Shown here in pieces: positions 49,164 to 62,453 of a stretch of 64,000 nucleotides of DNA; position 1 is the stretch's first letter, and every line of letters begins with the position of its first letter. The notes under the pieces are model-generated. The model did no database searches and was not told where the DNA came from. It saw nothing but the letters and a program-made list of their open reading frames with translations. Both the position numbers and the translations under genes were made by a program. Origin of the DNA: Trichosphaerium sp. ATCC 40318 (Eukaryota; Protista; Tubulinea); assembly GCA_038496445.1 (NCBI GenBank), contig JALMLS010000138.1, positions 186,001 to 250,000 of the forward strand, written 5' to 3'.

Positions 49164-52038
49164 TTAGAGATTCCATTCTGGAGTAGCCTATTCAGATATG
49201 GGTTAGCAAAACCTTAGAAGGACAGGGCTTAAAATAAAGTTGACAACACGTGCCACTCCTTGATTCAAATCTGTTAATGCCATTTCATCAATCTGATTCC
49301 ATTCTGTATTATCAAGTTGAATGTCATCATGTGTTTGTCCAGGGTTAAAGAAATCATCTCCACCACTGCTACCGCCATTATTATTTTGTACAATAGCTTG
49401 AGTATAATTATCTATACTCTCAACAATACTATCTGTTGAAGAAGGTTCCAGTGAATGTATACCCAAAGGACGTGTAATAAAATCTTCTTGTTGTTGATTG
49501 CTACTTTCATCATATTGTCTTTGTTGTTGAAATTGCTCTTGTAGACTAACAACACAAGCGTTATTAGTTTGTCGTTGTTGTTGATTGAAATTAACTACTA
49601 CTTCCTCGTCTTGAAATGGTCTCGCTGCTAGCGTTAAGTCATTCCTTATTGGAGTAGGTTGTAGTTGTTGTGGCAGCTGTTTGTCATCTAAAATGCCAAA
49701 TGCTTGTGCTTGTATCTTTGTTAACATTCGTATTACACTAGCCTTTCGAAAGGTTGAAGCACAGCTCTTTTGCTGATGTGGTGCAAAATCACGGTCAGGT
49801 GGTTCTTTTGGTGTGAATAATAGCTAAAGGTAACGTTAGAGTTATTCTTGAAAAAAAGCACGTGCCTTACAAACCTTCTTTGCAAGCCGCCATCTAAGTT
49901 AGAACAAAAAAAGTTACATTTGATGGTTGTTTAGATATCGCGATTACTCGGAGACTTACTGTTTTGATGCCTCTCTTAGTCTTTCCAAGACTACCACGAA
50001 CTCGTTAGGAGCATCAAGCTCAGAGAAAATCTGACAGAGAAATTAGAAGAGTAATTAAAGAATGAACCGAGTAAAAGGATATGACGCTTCTATTACACTA
50101 CATACCTCTAATAGCATTTTTATAAGGTGTACGCTTGTCAGTCGTATTTTGGAAAAAGTTTCTAACTTCTTAAAGCCGGAGAGAATCGTCTAAATCCAAC
50201 ACTGTTAACAGGATCCAACTTTTCCAAAAACAAACAGTAGAGCTCTTACAATATAGGCGTTACTTCGCTCTCCACAAGCCAGTTGGAATTTAGATCTTGT
50301 GTACATGAGCATCATACGTGTATGAAATCCTTTAATATCTTCAGAAAGGGCATCTGCTTGCATAAGCCTCAACTACAACAATATGAGTATACTTCGAAAT
50401 ACCGGTTTATAAAACTTTTCTATTATGTTTGTACCAAGCAGTTTGCCTTTTCACCTGGACTAAGTGGTTTACCTTTACTTGCAGCTTTGCGTATCTATGG
50501 AAGTCAGCAGTGCAATTCACAACAATTGTAATGTTTGTCATGTTGCTTAAACTAACAACCAACTAAACGAAAAAAAAAAGACGCAGCAAAAAAAGACAAA
50601 AGAGTAAGTACATCTGCGCTGACTTGTGACATCAAACATAATATTAGAGAAACTTTTTCATATCTTTTGAGCTTATGTAGTGCGCCTAAAATGAATTTAA
50701 AATCATGTGTTATTCTCTGACAACGTAACCAAATTCCTTTTTTTTTTTTTTGTTGAAATTACAGATTAATCTTTTGCCTTTACGTACCTTCACAAGATAC
50801 CATAAGCGAAACAGAAGTCTCCTGCATTCTTGTTATCCTAGATTTAGCAGACCCACCACCAAATTTTATTTCATGAAAATCAACCATTTTTAACACGTGA
50901 TTTTCTAGTTCTGTTCGTGACTCTATTTATTTTATCATTAGAAAAAACTAAACTTTATAATGTCGAACCTGGTGGTTTGATTTGTTTAAATTTTCTTGCT
51001 TGTTCACATGCTTGTCTTACGTATTGTACAGAAGGAGAAAGTTCTGTGTCGAAATATGTCATTACAGCAAGGAGAACATCACCCGCTGTGTTCGTTGTGA
51101 GTAGTCAAGATTAAAAGAGGTAATAAATATACGCACATGCTATTTTAAGATCAACGACATCATCAAGAAGTTTCCAGTGTTGCATGGCAAGCTGTTTCAG
51201 CTGGTTCTTCTGTTCGGTGTTTCCTGAAATAAAAGCTCCAAGTGCAGCAGCAGCATACGTTTGATATGATGTAGGACTCACTTCAAAAAAACAGTAAGTT
51301 CAATACCTTACTATAGAATTTCGTGCCTTTAGTGAGCGGTGCTCTTGTTGCATCAAGAGGTAACAGTACATCAGCAATGTGTGCAATATCGATATCATAT
51401 ACTGCATCGACATATGCATATACAACATTCGCATTCACCTAAAATAGAATCCCGTAAGCATTTTTGGCGTTTTTTCTAGTTTTTTTGAAAACAAGATTTC
51501 CTGCATTTGTTGTTTGTTAAATGGTAAATAAAAGACACAGATCAGTTATCAGTAGCTAAAGGTTATTTTAAAGCGATTTTGACTTTTGTTCCCAAAAAAC
51601 CTTTCTTAGACAAAGTTGTACAAAGAGCACCATACCATTTGCACGCCCACGTTTGAAGCAGATAACGTATGCGTCATGGCCTGATCTAAACTGTCGTTTT
51701 TATGTAATTCTGCGTTTTGTATTGTCTCCAATTGTTCTTGTTGTTTCTGTACGAGTGCCTCCAACTCTGCTATCCTATCTAGGTACTTTTGGCGATAGCC
51801 TGTAATTATCAGTACAAATTACGCGCGTTTGCGTACCTGGACGCGGTCCTCGCTTTTTTGGAGCAACGTAAATACATTCGCTGTTACTTTTCAAACACAC
51901 AGAGCAAGGTTGACCTATTTCGCTGTAAACTCGCTTGTTTAATAGGTATTTACCTCTATCACACTTATCATGTCGTTTACGGCACCTCAAACAAGCCTTC
52001 TTTGGTGTAAGCTTCCGTTTCTTCCGTGGCGGCTCCAT
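49164..52038 (-). CDS. Zn(II)2Cys6 binuclear cluster (Gal4-like) transcription factor
   Basis: PPRKKRK NLS; ACLRCRKRHDKCD..QPCSVCLKSNSECIY..KKRGPRPGYRQKYLDRIAELEAL; helical middle region; Q-rich and acidic C-terminus. Confidence 0.9.
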
Positions 52039-52350: not shown

Positions 52351-53497
52351 TTATAAGAGCTTGTTTGCGTAGAATTTAGGGTCCTCGGTGCTTAGATATA
52401 AGCCGAGGATATAACAAACAAGTCCAAAAACTAAACAGAGAATAAGAAACTGCAAAATTTGTAATTTACATTTCTATTTTCTTTGGTACCTGCAATGATT
52501 GTATTCCATAATTCTACCTCGCTTCTCTCATACCATAAAATACCTGTATATGCCATGATAAACAATGTATTGATACGTACAAAGCCCAATGCGTATGGCT
52601 TGTACTCCTACAATTGAGTTAAAATAATATTTCGCTGTGCGGTACAGAATTTTTTTTCCTTCAAATAAATGTTGTCTTTTTCGTACTTTGAAAGGATACT
52701 CAACAATCGTAAGTAATGAAATACAAAGCGCAGATAATATGACACCACAGCAATACTCTAACGATCCTGCTATTGTGACCTCTGAGTAGTCATAGGCGGC
52801 AAACATTGTGCCAACACCCATTGTTGTAACAAACAATGCAATGAGAGGTAGAACTATACTCTAGTGAGCGTATGAACCAAATAAAACAATACAATATCGA
52901 TTTACACGTGAAAATCGTGAAATGTCACAAGTCATACAAAAACAGCAAGAAAGTCATTTTGTCGTTACCAAACTGCAATAACATGTACGTACACAGTATT
53001 CTATGCGCCCATTTATGCTTTAAGGCATCTCTAAAGTGGTATTACTTCGAGACCAAAATAAAATAGTGACAAAGTCTTTTTAACTCCCAATATGTCAAAA
53101 CCAGCCAATACGTACTTGGTCCTCATGAGCATGAACACGTTCACCAAGAACCATGGAGAAATAATGCCAAACATGTATCCGTATGCGTGAGCAGTGTCGT
53201 GGTGCTCATAGTGGTAGTGTGGGTCACCTGTTACATGTTAATAACGTGGGTACTTCTTATCAGTTAGATATTTAGATGAGATAGCTTACAAACGCGTTGT
53301 AGTACTGTAAAATGATTCAAAATGCTCACTTACCCCAATGATGGTTTACAACTCTTGAAATACCGCTTACTATATCTCCAATAGCTGGTGAGCGTTAATG
53401 TAACGTCTTACAGCTTCCCACGTCATAACAATTTAAAAAACGTACCTGCAGCAAATAAAACTAATGTAGCCACTTGAAGTACTGCAGCAGACCTCAT
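52351..53497 (-). CDS. Hypothetical multi-pass membrane protein with His-rich loop
   Basis: Spliced: MRSAAVLQVATLVLFAA..VNHHWG..DPHYHYEHHDTAHAYGYMFG, then several hydrophobic segments, ending FYANKLL*. Confidence 0.6.
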
Positions 53498-53573
53498 TGT
53501 TGTTGAACTTGTTCTACTGTGACTTAAAAAGACTTGCTTATGGTGTATTTTGGTTTATTTTGTGAATAACACA
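53498..53573. promoter_or_regulatory. Putative bidirectional promoter (76 bp between divergent start codons)
   Basis: Divergent ATGs at 53497 (-) and 53574 (+). Confidence 0.45.
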
Positions 53574-56500
53574 ATGGCGCACAACAGACAGTCACGAGGT
53601 GACCGTAAACCTGTTGGGGGGTCTTCACAAACAGGAGAGCAACAGAGCGGCTTCAGCAAGTTCTTTTCCAAAGTAAAGGCTGTGTTGAACCCAACTGTAG
53701 AGTACGACATTAAATTTTTGCATTTGTGGTTTTTGGTTTTATTCTGTTGCGTTAATTTTAGCAGAGTTGGCGATGGATACGACGATCGATACTATCAACC
53801 ACGCGAAAAGCTTCCTCCGTTTAACAGAGTTGCTTATTGGAAGCAAGAATCAGCTTGGACACTCGCAGACAAACGTAGCAAGTATGTAGTTTGCAAGAGA
53901 GCGGTTTATACGCGTTTTTACCTTTATCACCCGTTCAAGAACTAAAATAACGGGTAAGGTATGAAACTGTCGAGTTCCTGCCTCTAGATGACTTGCCATC
54001 ATGGGCGGACGTTGCCGAATTAAATAAAGAAAGTTTGGGTACGACAACAAATTCTGCTTTAATACTTTTTATCGCTGCATACGCTTTATGAGATTGCCTT
54101 GTAGCGTTTTTCAAATAATAGATGCTATTACAACTTTTTGCAAGAGAATATTTGTATTAAATCGTATTCTAGACCGTAAACAAGCGGAAAGAGATGTTGA
54201 GGTTGCTAAATACAAGACTAAAGAGTTAAAAATCAAAGATCTAACTAATGATCCACATCCGTCTTCTTTCTTTCCACCAAGCGAGGAGATAAACCAGAAA
54301 GTATGCATATGGCAAGGCGACAGTACGTTATAAACTGGAAAAGCAACTAGACAAAACAGGAAGACGAATGTCACATTCCCTTTAGCCTAAACAGCTTCAT
54401 TTGTCTTTTATTTTTTGTTCTCTACAAAAAGGTACAATGCTCTAATAACCTTTACTAGTAACACGACTTGAAATTGATGCCGTTGTCAACGCTGCTAATG
54501 CTGCACTCGCTGGAGGAGGTGGAGGTATGTACCACTGTCATAGGATCAATTTGTACTCTAAAAGAAGTCATTCTTTGAATTGAACCATTTCGATTCATAC
54601 TGTCTTCTGGAGGCCTTCCGAAAAGTTTACTGTATTTAATATCTATTATAGTGGACGGAGCTATCCACAAGGCTGCAAGGGGAACGCTTAGACGTGAAGA
54701 AAAATCCCTCAATGGATGTAAAACTGGATTTACTAAAATTTCGAAAGGTCATGGTTTGCCCGCCTACTGTACGTACTCTTTGATCACGTGACTGGCTATT
54801 TTTATCATTATTCCATGTTTATGCTGTTTGTGTAGTTATTTTGCACACTGTCGGTCCACGGATGGGCTTTATGGACCGCAAACTCCCTAAGCGGAAGCTT
54901 GTTAGTTGTTATGAGACGTCCTTAGAGTTAGCAAAGAAATATGGCATTCGCACTCTTGTACGTTTTTTTTCTTACACTATTTGCTATAACAGTATTCTCA
55001 CTGTTGATTGTAGGCTTTTTGTTGTATTTCAACGGGTGTGTATGGTTATGATAATAAATTTGCAGCACACCATGCTATGGAAGGAGGTACGTAGAGCATT
55101 GGTCTCAACATTCAGTGGAATGTTAATACAAGCTAACAACACAACAGTACGAAGATGGCTTGAGACAGATGACAATGGTGATTATATTGATCGTGTTATA
55201 TTCTGTGTATTTGCAGATAAGGACAAGGAGTATTATTATAAATTTATTCCAATGTATTATCCTCCTGTATATGCTGATAGATATGTTAAAATGCCACACC
55301 ATATTGACGATTGGTACGTTTGTTTTTTTTTTCTGTTATTTCTTCATCTCTTGCCGTTTATCAACGTGATAATGTTTTAACATAGTACATAGGTGGACTC
55401 GCGTTGAAAAGAATTTTGCAGAGTGCCCAAAAAATGCGGACGATTTAATGGCAAGTGAAGCACTTTGAATTTGTTGTGGTCTTATTATCAAATATGTGAT
55501 ACTTACTTTTTTTTTAGTCTGCTATTAAAGGACTACATCAAGGATCTAATCTGGACCTCAGTGGACTAGATAAGTTTTTCGAAGAGCACATGGATGACAA
55601 GCGCCGAACAGAATTTTTTGAAGAGCTTCTACCTAAAATATTTAAGCTTGCTAAGAGGTATGATTGATTCTTTGAGTAAAATCGCCACTGTCACTTGTGA
55701 TGTCATTCAGCACGTGGCTCAAATTGTTAACCTGTTGTATTAGTGTTTCTACGATATTTGGCGCTAACAATAAGATCCCTTATTGCTACCAAGGTGATAA
55801 GAGAAAAGTCACAATTGGTCAGAAACAAGTATGTCTAAATACAAATTCGTCAATTTAACTTAATACTCTTTTGTGTGTGCTAACTGTATTATTAATAGAT
55901 TGCTGTTTTGACTGCTTGTGCATTTTTTTGTTGGCTACCAAAACAAACGTGCGTTTCTTTTATTTGTTCTTCGCTGTGGTCTTGAGGAGTTGTTCTGTAT
56001 TTTTATTAACCAATGGAATAGGTTCCATGGTCAAAAGTTATGTGAGAGTAACTTTTTTGATCTTTATCGCTCAACAGATACACCAGTTGAAAAAATTCCA
56101 ACAGTATGTAGAAACATTTAACATCTTCTTCTCGTTTAATCTCCTTTTTGTAGTCTCACGATCGCTTCCCTTCTGTCCCATTTAGTGATGATTATCCATG
56201 GGAAGCTGATTCCGATAGTGATTCAGATGATGACGATGACGATGATGATGACGATGACGATGACGACGATTTTGAAGATGGTAAAAAGCGAAAGAAACCA
56301 AGCCACTCAGATGAAGGTGACGAGGTCACAGTATCAGAAAACTCCGATGATGCCAGTGGCGAAGAGAAAGATGAAAAGAAGGATGTTAAGAGCAAGAAAT
56401 CATCTTCCAAGAAAAAGTCTGAGAAAGCAGAAGCCAGCAGTGATGAAGGAACAGAAGAGGAAGGTGAAAAACCTAAAGATAAAAAAGAAGCTTCAGAAGA

Positions 56501-58561
56501 AGATTCTGATACTGAAGTTAAAAAGACTAAAGCCACTAAGGCTGATGATAAAGGAGAGGATAGTGGTGATAGTGCTGAAGTCGAGAAGAAGTCATCGTCA
56601 AAGAAAAAAGGAAAAGAAGAAATGAGCGACGAAGAAGATGAGAAACCAAAGGAAAAGAAACCTAAGGTAACAAACTTTTTTTTTCCTAAATGTATAAGTT
56701 GCTAACAGTACTACCCAAGAAAAAGAAGAACAAACCATTGGTGCCTGCATACACAGATATCCAAGCAGCAAAGGTAACAAGCTAATAGTTTTATTAATGT
56801 AACTGACAGAGAATTAGTTAAATTCTTTCATTAATTACTTGAAAGTATCCACAAAATCTAGTACGTCTCATCTTGATTAACTTGATTACGCCTATTACGT
56901 GGTATTTATACTGGAACCTAGAAGCGCCTAAAGGCAATGTTACCTTTGTTCGTAATTCAAACTATGGACCAAAGATAAATTGGAAACAGAATTCACGTGT
57001 TGTTGGTGAACGTTTAGATTCTGAAACACTTCAGTTCTCAGCAGAAGGTACTCTTTAATAGCTTGGTACATTTTTAGTGATTAAACCTGTTTAATAGACC
57101 AAAGCACATTCCATGATAGCTGGCTTCAATTATATGAAACACCTCGTGTCTTTGGGTCATCTGTATTTAACGTACGCTTTTCTGACAAAGTTGGAACATA
57201 ATAATTGATATTGTCTTCTCTTAGTGGGATAAGGACTACATTACAACCTCTGAATCTAAAATTCTTGAATACAACGAGTTGTGGATAGCAACTTTATTTT
57301 GCCCTGCATTAAAGTACGTTATGACAAGCTCATTGCTTTGTACTTTTTGTAGAAAGGTTAATTTGACTTTACCGATTTTTTTTAGTCGCAAAGAGTGGTT
57401 AATGGTATCAGGCATACAAAGATATAATACTATTTCTGATGGACCAAAGTTTAAAGTCAGTTCTGTTACTGATGACACTCCATCGTACGTTGTTTTTAGT
57501 CGGCTCTTTAGAGCACAACAAACAAAAAAGCACATTTAGAGTTACACCTTTTCTGTTCTGTTTTTGCCTTTGTTGAAGGCTATCTACTGATAAGTCTTGG
57601 ATTGACATTAATGATTTTATGTTAGTGATAAGAATATTCGTGATACCCACATGGTATTCCTTACTCCTTACACATGCTCAAGCAAGGAACAAAAATCCCA
57701 GCTTAATAGAAGTCATATTACTATTGATCTGTTTAAAATGCATCGTATCATCGATGCTGGATCTGCATCTGTTAATCTTGTCATTGGTGACTGGGGATGT
57801 TCTAAAGCATTTAAAGGTGATATCAAGATCAAATCGCTTATGTGGATTATTGCTGCTTTGAGTACAGCTGAAGCTGAAAAGAAGCCTAGAATAACCTTCT
57901 CTAAAGAAATGCCTTTTGAGGTTAGTCACCCCTTTTTTGCTTTTTTATGAAGAAACTGCGTGATTTACTCACTTTATTTCTATTTTAGCAAGAGGTTGTC
58001 AAGATGTTACATACATTAAAGACTCAAGAGGTTGAGATGGGCCACTTGTACCGTATTCTTGCAACAGGCATTCCGGTACTATTTTTTGAAGGCATTCTAT
58101 TGAAGCTAATGTTATTGTGTTCTAGCTCCCTGAACATGAAGCAATGAAAAAGAAGGGTACACTACCAGATGATGTACAATTTGGTGATGTATACGATCGT
58201 CTAATGATTCGATTTAAAAAATGGAAGAAAGAGCGTGATGCTTTAAGAAAACAACATGTGCGCTTAAATACTTAAGTCATTATTTTTTCTTCTCTTCTCT
58301 TTGTTCTTTTCGCTCACTGACTGGTAACAAATAGGAGAGAGACCAAAAAATTAGACAAAAAGAGAGGGAGTGGCGCCAGAAACAACTAGAGAAACAGCGT
58401 AGAAGGCAGAAGAAACTGATGGAAAAGGAAGTATGTGAATCTTTCCCTTCTTTTTTTTGCTTTTTTTTTTGCTGGTTTTTAGTACTTATTAAGTTTAATA
58501 GGGTTATGATTCGGGTAGAGGAGGACATAGTAGCAGATCAAAACCAAAGTCTCCACAATAA
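53574..58561 (+). CDS. MacroD-type ADP-ribosylhydrolase fused to a degenerate PARG domain with an acidic/basic insert and C-terminal coiled coil
   Basis: MacroD: [56 protein letters not shown]-like: [57 protein letters not shown]. Confidence 0.85.
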
Positions 58562-59156
58562 ATTACCCAAAAAAGATTTCCTTACACTTTTAGAATGTGT
58601 TCATTATTTCACTTCCGATACAAGCTGTTTCACGTCATGTACTCCCTACAGTTACTACTGGCGTTTAGCATGCTCTCAGACCTCACAATAAGTGTTATCT
58701 GTAAATATCCAGGTCAAACCCACCATGCTAGCCACGTAGAGTCAAACTGTGTCAGTTTCTTCCAAAACCTATTCAACAATTGCGTTGATAAATGCAGCCG
58801 CTTGTCTTAACACAGCGGACATTGTACCATAGAATGTAAAGAGGTATATGGTGCTGGTAGAACTAATTTTTACTCATTTAATCGATCTTTATATATTCTG
58901 GGTTTCAAACTACTGCAATCGATCATTTGTTTCTCATTTTGTTCATCACGTGAGCTTGTAGTTTTTTACCAAGCTAGAAGTACTTATTTTCTATATTATA
59001 CGTTACACGTTATTAGGCACGTATGAGTAGTGATAAACTAAAATGGGTAGCTCTTATAGATAATATATGTCACCTATCAATGACGTTCAGCAATTTACAA
59101 CTGTTTACGTCATTATTAAGTACAATTAACTTCAAACTAGGTACATAATATTGGTA

Positions 59157-60823: not shown

Positions 60824-62453
60824 ATGGCAGAACCACAAACTTCAGAGGTTAATTTACAATATGTTAACCGTTTGGCCACTGGCGACAAACATTCAATGGT
60901 AATCGCAGACGATGGCTTTGTTTACACGTGGGGAGGAAACGATGACCGCCAATTGGGTAACACAGACGAAGAAAAGAGTTCTATCGCAAGACCAATAAAG
61001 TCACCCATAAATATCGTCTGTATTGCTGCTGGATACGAACATAGCCTTGTACTTGATTCAAACGGTATTGTGTATTCATGGGGCAATAATAACAATGGAC
61101 AATTGGGTTTGGGTCACTTCTTGTCGCCTGTTTCGTCACCAACACGTGTTCCAAATCTCAAAAATATCATGAAAGTCACTGCCTATGATGTGAGCATGGC
61201 GTTATCACAATCAGGTAATGTCTACTCTTGGGGAGACAACAAATGTCGTGGATTGGGTCATTCATTCGACAAGGAGAAAGTTTCATCACCAGCGGTGATT
61301 CCTCATCTTGAAAATGTTCAAAAAATTGAAACAAATTGTTATGTAAGTGGAGCAATGACATCAACAGGTCATGTCTTTCTTTGGGGAACAACATTTGATG
61401 AAGCGATAGATAAATCATTATTCTTGAATCCAAAGACAATTTCACGTGTTCCAAGCATTGAAGATGCCACCGATATTGCCATTGGTCATAAACATGTGCT
61501 TGTTCTCCTCAAGTCAGGACAAGTATTTTCTTTTGGACGCAACTGGTATGGGCGTCTTGGGTTGAATGTTCGTCGTGACAAGGACGGCCAAGGTATCATC
61601 AAAGGACTGAATAACATTGTATCTGTCCATGCTGGTCTTTGGTCATCATTTGCGATTGATGATGAAGGTTGTTTGTTTGGTTGGGGTCAAGTGGAATGGA
61701 TTGATTTGTTTGAATCAAACAAACCATTAAAATTACCTGGAAAATATCTTGCGTTTGCAACTAAACGATGCCATTACTTGGCAATATCTCTTGATTTCAG
61801 ATTGGTTACAGGAGGTCGTAATTATTATGGAATAGCCGAACCACAAAAATTGATGTTCAAAAACCACAAAAAGGTACTCAAATCATTTATTGTCAATGTG
61901 ATGTGCAAACTGTTTGTTTAGGTAATCCAAACTCAAATGAACACTTCAGAAGAGATACGCAAAGAGTTGAAACAAGACCCAATATTACCACAAAAGTCAT
62001 GTATCAACAAACCAGATGTGTCTTTTGTTGACAACAAGGTACTGACAGTGAGATCTTCAGTATTAGTTTTTATTTACAATTTGTACTTTTAAGGGTGCAC
62101 CTATTGGACATGATTTATCAAGTACTGAATCATCTCCACAATTACCTAATGTAGATGTATTGAAAACTGTATGAATTATGTATTGCATTTGTTTGACTAA
62201 CACTTCATATATCTAGAATCCGATGCCAAGAACACCCGAAAGAAAAGAAAAATCAAGTACTCAAATTGAGTGGGCGAGTGTTTTGATATCAGCAGGGCTT
62301 GGCAAGTCAAGAGCACAACATTTTGGATCGAAAATGAATCGTGCGTGTTTTGAATTGAATGATGTCACAGGCAAGGTTATGAAAAGACTTGGATTCGATC
62401 CTTTAGAGCGTCTTGACTTTATTGAGTACCAAGACAAACAACTGCAATTGTGA
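60824..62453 (+). CDS. RCC1-repeat beta-propeller protein with C-terminal SAM-like domain
   Basis: RCC1 repeats (IAAGYEHSLVLDSNGIVYSWGNNNNGQLGLG etc.). Downstream exons end EWASVLISAGLGKSRAQHFGSKMNRACFELNDVTGKVMKRLGF. Confidence 0.85.

Follow-up and report, generated by a model that had tools for sequence, protein, structure and literature searches.

A MacroD-type macrodomain fused to a PARG-like fold with a rewritten active site in the amoeba Trichosphaerium sp. ATCC 40318

The stretch of DNA analysed here, termed the window, comprises 64,000 nucleotides (nt) of contig JALMLS010000138.1 (positions 186,001 to 250,000) from Trichosphaerium sp. ATCC 40318. At window positions 53574-58561 its forward strand carries a gene that joins a MacroD-type macrodomain to a fold of the poly(ADP-ribose) glycohydrolase (PARG) class, in which the catalytic loop has been rewritten. 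The removal of the last ADP-ribose from aspartate or glutamate residues is the step that PARG cannot perform and that is done by MacroD.

The fusion gene and its product

The region reads as eukaryotic, with short GT-AG introns, and the gene model was derived from open frames and splice sites and then adjusted to spliced RNA contigs. The contigs come from a sequencing-run search, which recovered near-identical sequence in two studies (runs X1 and X2) and were placed on 53400-58700. They are at least 99% identical to the window, and since they are spliced, they derive from RNA. Exons 1-3, 7 and 9-26 are backed by these contigs, with 19 junctions seen. X2 record 4 joins exons 1-3, and X2 record 6 extends from exon 9 through exon 15, i.e., the last macrodomain strand (RVIFCVF) is spliced to the PARG helical exons 10-14, which places the fusion on one RNA. 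X1 records 1-3 cover exons 14-26 with a single gap of 15 nt within the open exon 15. The junctions of the catalytic-loop exons (57047/57098 and 57171/57225) are present in an X1 contig at a depth of 23, and those of the C-terminal-tail exons are likewise found in an X1 contig.

In the resulting model, the coding region consists of 26 exons and 25 introns of 44-141 nt, ends with the stop codon TAA (58559-58561) and encodes 1033 amino acids (aa). A single reading frame is kept through all exons, with GT/GC-AG introns throughout. Introns that match RNA joints lie at 55314-55392, 55451-55517, 55658-55743, 55829-55898, 56104-56153, 56667-56719, 56774-56817, 57048-57097, 57172-57224, 57314-57385, 57485-57625, 57921-57988, 58076-58125, 58258-58334 and 58431-58501. 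The second of these (55451-55517), located between exons 10 and 11, is a GC-AG intron with a GCAAGT donor, where the X2 contig joint reads 55449>55517 and fits equally one place rightward. The most frequent donor start in the gene is GTACG (11 of 25 introns), which in nine introns extends to GTACGT. From the RNA contig pieces and their loose ends, exon 1 is placed at 53574-53701 and exon 2 at 53765-53881, and RNA contigs divide the stretch 56818-57047 into two exons (56818-56860 and 56922-57047). Exons 4-6 and 8 lie outside the contig pieces shown and are based on the open frame, GT-AG sites and motifs that continue unbroken across the junctions. In the spliced product of the exon 4-8 region these motifs read WQGD/ITRLEID, GGGG/VDGAIH and LPAY/FILHTVGP (slashes mark the junctions), and we take them to resemble MacroD1/2. 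Within the coding region, the window and the RNA contigs show eight differences, six of which are synonymous and two conservative (A66S, F800Y).

The protein starts with an extension (aa 1-159, exons 1-4, 53574-54322) that ends in ...KVCIWQGD and leads into the macrodomain. No Pfam family is matched by exon 4, and the extension presumably resembles the N-terminal extension of MacroD1/2. The macrodomain itself (approximately aa 159-335, exons 5-9, 54459-55313) is recognized by Pfam Macro in exon 6 (E 1.6e-4) and exon 7 (E 3.3e-6) separately. Compared with the PDB, exon 6 retrieves MACROD2 at the top (1.3e-5), followed by trypanosomatid macrodomains and MACROD1, and exon 7 retrieves GDAP2, MacroD-type hydrolases and MACROD2. 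The MacroD class is defined by the catalytic-loop signature Nx6GG[VLI] and the diphosphate-loop signature G[VIA][YF]G (PMC10951314). Regular expressions locate the former, as Nx6GGV, at aa 172-181 inside a motif of aa 169-186, and the latter as GVYG in CISTGVYGY at aa 264-272; moreover, HTVGP is found at aa 223-227 and the Asp/His pair of VDGAIH is retained. These class signatures and the Asn/Asp/His/Gly positions are shared with human MacroD1 and MacroD2 (PDB 2X47, 4IQY), which, unlike the amoeba protein, are not joined to a PARG fold. The macrodomain is predicted to be an active hydrolase of mono-ADP-ribosyl groups (Asp/Glu esters, O-acetyl-ADP-ribose).

The macrodomain is followed by the two parts of a PARG. 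A profile hidden Markov model (HMM), built from 23 canonical PARGs, 22 of which harbour GGG-x7-QEE, scores the spliced protein at 100.8 bits in two pieces. The first piece (aa 391-470, 24.9 bits) lies in the helical, PARG_cat_N-like part (aa 340-478, exons 10-14, 55393-56103), and the second (aa 662-934, 73.7 bits) defines the macro-fold part (aa 658-934, exons 16-23, 56744-58063). Between HMM positions 87 and 89, the protein contains a disordered-looking charged insertion of 177 aa (aa 479-655, 56154-56737), composed of 21% D, 21% K, 16% E and 15% S, with a poly-Asp run, the motif KRKK and a further 10-residue motif. A Lys/Arg/Gln/Glu-rich tail (aa 965-1033, 58204-58561), assigned by its composition, concludes the protein. 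Searched as single exons, exon 22 matches Pfam PARG_cat_C (E 8e-6) and exon 11 weakly matches PARG_cat_N; in a phmmer search of the PDB with exon 22, the first eleven entries are all PARG, aligned at the diphosphate loop (human PARG 418-446). Canonical eukaryotic PARGs (human 4B1H; Tetrahymena 4EPP) carry both sub-domains in the same order as the fusion protein, which in comparison adds the charged insertion in a loop of the helical part and the N-terminal MacroD domain.

Relatives were searched with exon 22 among 1.84 billion representatives, and only the protein P0001 and an insect PARG fragment were found. P0001 comprises 540 aa, originates from an intron-free JGI contig (L001, 1792 nt) and is collinear with aa 510-1027 of the fusion protein, i.e., with the charged linker, the PARG-like domain and the basic tail (E 6e-53). 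The evidence for the fold consists of an AlphaFold2 model of P0001 (residues 125-410), together with the HMM alignment of the fusion protein. The model (pLDDT 83.6, pTM 0.80), for which the input alignment included canonical PARGs and the exons of the window, matches the PARG structures of human, mouse, rat, fly and Tetrahymena with TM scores of 0.69-0.75 (human PARG: TM 0.74, E 7e-16) and an Atlas vertebrate PARG cluster with a TM score of 0.77; bacterial PARGs match far more weakly. The model leans on the canonical rows and represents the relative, and it confirms the fold, not the details of the site. The two-part profile match and this model together identify the C-terminal part as a complete PARG fold of the canonical type, with helical and macro parts.

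An earlier description of the locus, made from the letters and their open reading frames (ORFs) and referred to here as the sequence-only reading, had proposed one frame across about 17 introns that connects an intact MacroD domain to PARG accessory and catalytic regions. The single frame stands, and the intron count is corrected to 25. All motifs quoted there are present in the spliced product, the intact MacroD type is upheld by Pfam, the PDB matches and both class signatures, and the PARG fold is borne out by the HMM and the P0001 model. The RNA contigs, with exons 9-15 joined in X2 record 6 and exons 14-26 in the X1 records, likewise agree with one transcript unit.

Several other features are located in the neighbourhood. 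On the opposite strand, a spliced gene is seen at window positions 53100-53490; its start codon (CAT at about 53486-53488) apparently lies some 85 nt upstream of the ATG of the fusion gene, and the two genes form an apparent head-to-head pair. An X1 contig at this gene ends at 53446 with a spliced continuation, and its product features a hydrophobic N-terminal stretch and a His-rich HYHYEHH motif. An ORF piece on the reverse strand (51775-52038) encodes a fungal-type Zn(2)-Cys(6) binuclear cluster domain (E 1.4e-6), and a forward-strand ORF of 365 aa (60824-61921) gives strong matches to RCC1-like repeats (WD40_RLD 4.7e-69).

The rewritten active site and its conservation

The active site was aligned by the HMM, by MAFFT with canonical PARGs and by hmmalign, all of which are in agreement; positions follow human PARG numbering, and the roles of the residues were taken from PMC3519477 and PMC7050489. 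The rewritten loop spans aa 733-759 of the fusion protein and is split by an exon junction that is present in X1. In its first half (57124-57171), the canonical V736-D-F-A-N740 is replaced by L-Y-E-T-P in the fusion protein and by V-Y-A-T-P in P0001, and G744-G-G746 by G-S-S in both proteins. In its second half (57225-57257), V753-Q-E-E756 reads T-T-S-E in the fusion protein and I-P-G-E in P0001. Accordingly, the signature GGG-x(6-8)-QEE gives way to GSS-x11-TSE and GSS-x10-PGE, respectively, while the flank NELWIATLF (aa 765-773) is kept. The substitutions in the fusion protein (D737>Y, N740>P, G745/G746>S, Q754>T, E755>S) remove the buried proton-relay residue Asp737, Asn740 at the 3''-OH, Gln754, and Glu755 at the 2''-OH.

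The changes extend beyond this loop. The Tyr clasp of canonical PARGs (YTGYA, 792-796, with Y792 and Y795) is absent, since the corresponding positions read I-S-D-gap-G in the fusion protein and T-V-D-K-D in P0001. The diphosphate-binding loop (aa 865-876, 57786-57821), which was also compared with human PARG through the exon 22 search of the PDB, differs from the canonical GNWGCG-AFGGD by N869>D, G873>S, one inserted residue and G876>K, and it keeps the W, G, C, A-F and D positions. Taken against canonical PARG, the fusion protein thus has replacements at D737, N740, Q754, E755, Y792/Y795 and N869, as well as one additional residue in the diphosphate loop.

Other elements of the site are retained. 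Both the fusion protein and P0001 keep Glu727 (adenine N6), Gly744, Glu756, Trp870, Gly871, Phe875 and Asp878; the fusion protein also shares the LKxL..AA helix and an NPEL-like NEL with canonical PARG. From 69 columns that are at least 90% conserved in canonical PARGs, 34 are kept in the fusion protein, 26 in P0001 and 23 in both. The lone Glu left in the loop, E758 (codon 57252-57254), is aligned with human Glu756 by HMM and MAFFT, and the two residues are alike in being seven residues before NEL/PEL. Glu756 is the catalytic acid/base of PARG and contacts the 1''-OH (PMC3519477, PMC7050489).

Mutations at these positions are detrimental in canonical PARGs. The bovine equivalents of D737N and E755N abolish PARG activity and hardly affect inhibitor binding, and human PARG E755A is inactive (PMC3519477). 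In Arabidopsis, AtPARG1 is inactivated when the third Gly of its signature is changed (G264L), and no activity is detectable for AtPARG2, a natural paralogue with GGL (PMC4287526). As five mutationally critical positions are changed at once, a canonical poly(ADP-ribose) (PAR) glycohydrolase activity is very unlikely, and judging from the alignments this activity has very probably been lost. Arabidopsis PARG2 resembles the fusion protein in that it represents a natural, expressed PARG fold with an altered signature Gly, where inactivity is only predicted for the fusion protein. Yet, PARG2 keeps QEE (GGL-x7-QEE) and most of the site, is not fused to a macrodomain and shares 52% identity with its active paralogue (PMC4287526), whereas divergence is far greater in the fusion protein, which has a rewritten loop. 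Alternative splicing that would restore GGG..QEE is ruled out, as no exon encoding it is present in any frame of the window.

The replacement loop does not have the appearance of a decaying site. It belongs to the two best-conserved 16-residue windows in the comparison with P0001 (8/16 identical, compared with 28% across 252 aligned columns), and the two proteins have in common the pattern Y-x-T-P-[KR]-x-x-G-S-S-x-F as well as several derived changes (D737>Y, A739>T, G745/746>S and Q886>W). Since the loop is conserved in P0001 and among the best-conserved stretches, it looks selected rather than decayed, and neutral decay of the site is rejected on this conservation together with the shared derived residues. 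The sequence-only reading had called the PARG part dead, with the signature lost and the flanks retained. The loss is confirmed, as DFAN..GGG..QEE now reads YETP..GSS..TSE between intact flanks; the term itself suits the missing signature, but not the lone Glu at the place of the catalytic Glu756 or a replacement loop that is conserved in a distant relative.

Word-indexed searches with P0001 and with the family alignment returned no further members, and neither did two metagenome scans and one viral scan, which also missed the contig of P0001 itself, so that these blanks are weak. A phmmer search of the PDB with P0001 gave no match, and PARG is reached only by profiles and by exon 22. As a side observation, the insect (Homalodisca) protein P0002 consists of the C-terminal segment of PARG repeated four times in tandem, which probably reflects an error of annotation or assembly. 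At the 5' end of L001, in-frame stops lie upstream of the charged linker, and there is no macrodomain; positions 1-140 of the contig carry in-frame stops and a short opposite-strand ORF. This end has probably arisen by chimeric assembly at a stretch of low complexity, or by truncation.

Proposed function and competing readings

We propose that the protein is a MacroD eraser on a non-catalytic, selected PARG fold that targets the MacroD domain, a reading to which we assign an even chance. The N-terminal MacroD domain would hydrolyse mono-ADP-ribose (MAR) esters of Asp/Glu as well as O-acetyl-ADP-ribose. The C-terminal PARG fold, devoid of the residues that hold and activate the distal ribose, would be non-catalytic and under selection. 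In combination with the acidic/basic insertion and the basic tail, the PARG fold may direct the MacroD eraser towards targets that are ADP-ribosylated or bound to chromatin, via an ADP-ribose-type ligand in the remodelled cleft or via a partner protein. A 14-residue motif, the poly-Asp run and the K/R-rich tail are hints towards a nuclear or chromatin-associated location, which is probable.

For the PARG fold we infer a PAR-reader or a targeting role. The sequence-only reading had the fold bind PAR or act as a scaffold that steers the MacroD domain; the steering part persists in our proposal, and the PAR-reader part is weakened by the changes to the Tyr clasp, N869, G873 and the diphosphate loop. 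In the cleft, the adenine- and phosphate-side residues are partly kept, with changes in the Tyr clasp and in the Gly-rich loop.

Several observations weigh against this proposal. ADP-ribose binding is uncertain and may have been lost too, given that neither the Tyr clasp nor N869 remains, that G873 has changed and that the diphosphate loop is one residue longer. The equivalent of Glu756 is kept in both proteins, which would be needless for a pure binding module, and Phe902 is kept in the fusion protein and not in P0001. The 5' end of L001, being truncated or chimeric, is uninformative on whether the macrodomain fusion is conserved, and the AlphaFold2 model is that of the relative, built with canonical PARGs in the alignment. 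Furthermore, the whole coding region is not spanned by any single RNA contig, and X1 is confined to the 3' half, which leaves room for a separate, shorter transcript; the coverage by X1 is most simply a 3' bias.

Part of the same evidence can be read in favour of a pure scaffold, where the PARG fold binds no nucleotide and serves as a structural, oligomerisation or protein-interaction domain, while the charged insertion and the tail account for the targeting. The catalytic loop is rewritten, the diphosphate loop has gained a residue and lost glycines, and the clasp is gone; in P0001, the loop reads STWGGEQMFQAD and F902 is lost. However, both proteins retain E727, E756, W870, G871, F875 and D878, and conservation in the former active-site loop exceeds the average of the domain, a pattern not expected of a ligand-free cleft. 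Considering both sides, we regard a pure scaffold as unlikely, if with some weight.

The retained glutamate and the conserved loop can also be taken as the signs of a rewired hydrolase, in which the PARG fold would cleave another ADP-ribose linkage or substrate by means of Glu758 and the new loop, and the protein would act as an all-in-one eraser with two activities. Both family members retain a Glu at the aligned position of the catalytic acid/base, few stretches are as well conserved as the rewritten loop, and D737>Y, A739>T, G745/746>S and Q886>W in both proteins point to a stable new site. Precedents are found in the DUF4804/MavL macrodomains, whose catalytic loop differs and whose activity is Arg-specific (PMC10951314), and in bacterial ARH3-MacroD fusions, which have been proposed as all-in-one erasers (PMC4245714). 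On the other hand, the replacements affect at least four residues on each of which canonical PARG depends (PMC3519477, PMC4287526); in addition, the Tyr clasp is missing and the diphosphate loop has changed. Such an enzyme is rather improbable on balance, and yet the conservation of both the catalytic Glu and the new loop makes it a rival to be taken seriously. A doubtful extension of the idea is that the replacement loop (Tyr-x-Thr-Pro-[Lys/Arg]-x-x-Gly-Ser-Ser-x-Phe ... single Glu) might form a new catalytic or recognition site and characterise a PARG-derived class that has so far gone unrecognised and is specific for a ligand or linkage of its own; in the fusion protein, this site would work in series with MacroD as a one-chain, two-step eraser.

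Finally, the locus might be an artefact, i.e., adjacent MacroD and PARG-like genes wrongly merged or a decaying pseudogene, and the lack of a contig across the coding region, with X1 limited to exons 14-26 and X2 mainly to exons 1-15, fits a merger; yet X2 record 6 splices exon 9 on through exons 10-15, the PARG homology begins directly after the macrodomain without a stop or space for a promoter, one frame persists in 26 exons, strain differences are mostly synonymous and a collinear transcribed relative exists, so that an artefact of either kind is highly improbable and a merger is largely excluded.

Relation to known systems and implications

The literature was searched in full text and yielded no description of a Macro-PARG fusion or of a pseudo-PARG, in agreement with the sequence-only reading, which knew of no such fusion; domain-architecture databases were outside this search and may catalogue it. 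A survey of PAR systems lists PBZ, a Nab2-type zinc finger, G8, a transmembrane segment and Ribosomal_L32e as extra domains on eukaryotic PARGs, and no macrodomain (PMC4245714). In the same survey, bacterial ARH3-MacroD fusions are described as possible all-in-one PAR erasers (PMC4245714). Similar to the amoeba protein, these fusions combine on one polypeptide a chain-degrading type of module with a macrodomain that removes the terminal ADP-ribose. In the bacterial proteins, however, both modules keep their catalytic residues and the partner adopts an ARH fold, whereas the amoeba protein is eukaryotic and features a PARG fold with a rewritten site.

The layout that we propose for the fusion protein is also reminiscent of PARP9, with the eraser MD1 and the reader MD2 (bioRxiv 10.64898/2026.08.12.744356), and of PARP14 (PMC10470015), where an active MacroD-type eraser and a non-hydrolytic macro-fold module reside on one chain. 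In these proteins the second module is a MacroH2A-like macrodomain with demonstrated binding, whereas in the fusion protein it is a PARG-class fold and the binding is putative.

PARG is treated as a one-function family, and natural non-catalytic PARG folds have hardly been studied, with Arabidopsis PARG2 as the sole case found. The diverged PARG fold described here is transcribed and fused to MacroD, and conservation of its rewritten loop extends to a distant relative. If this fold reads ADP-ribose, the protein would be a reader-eraser assembled from two macro-fold classes and might provide a new module for the detection of PAR or MAR. Should the PARG fold instead prove to be a hydrolase with a rewired site, the PARG class would gain a linkage specificity.

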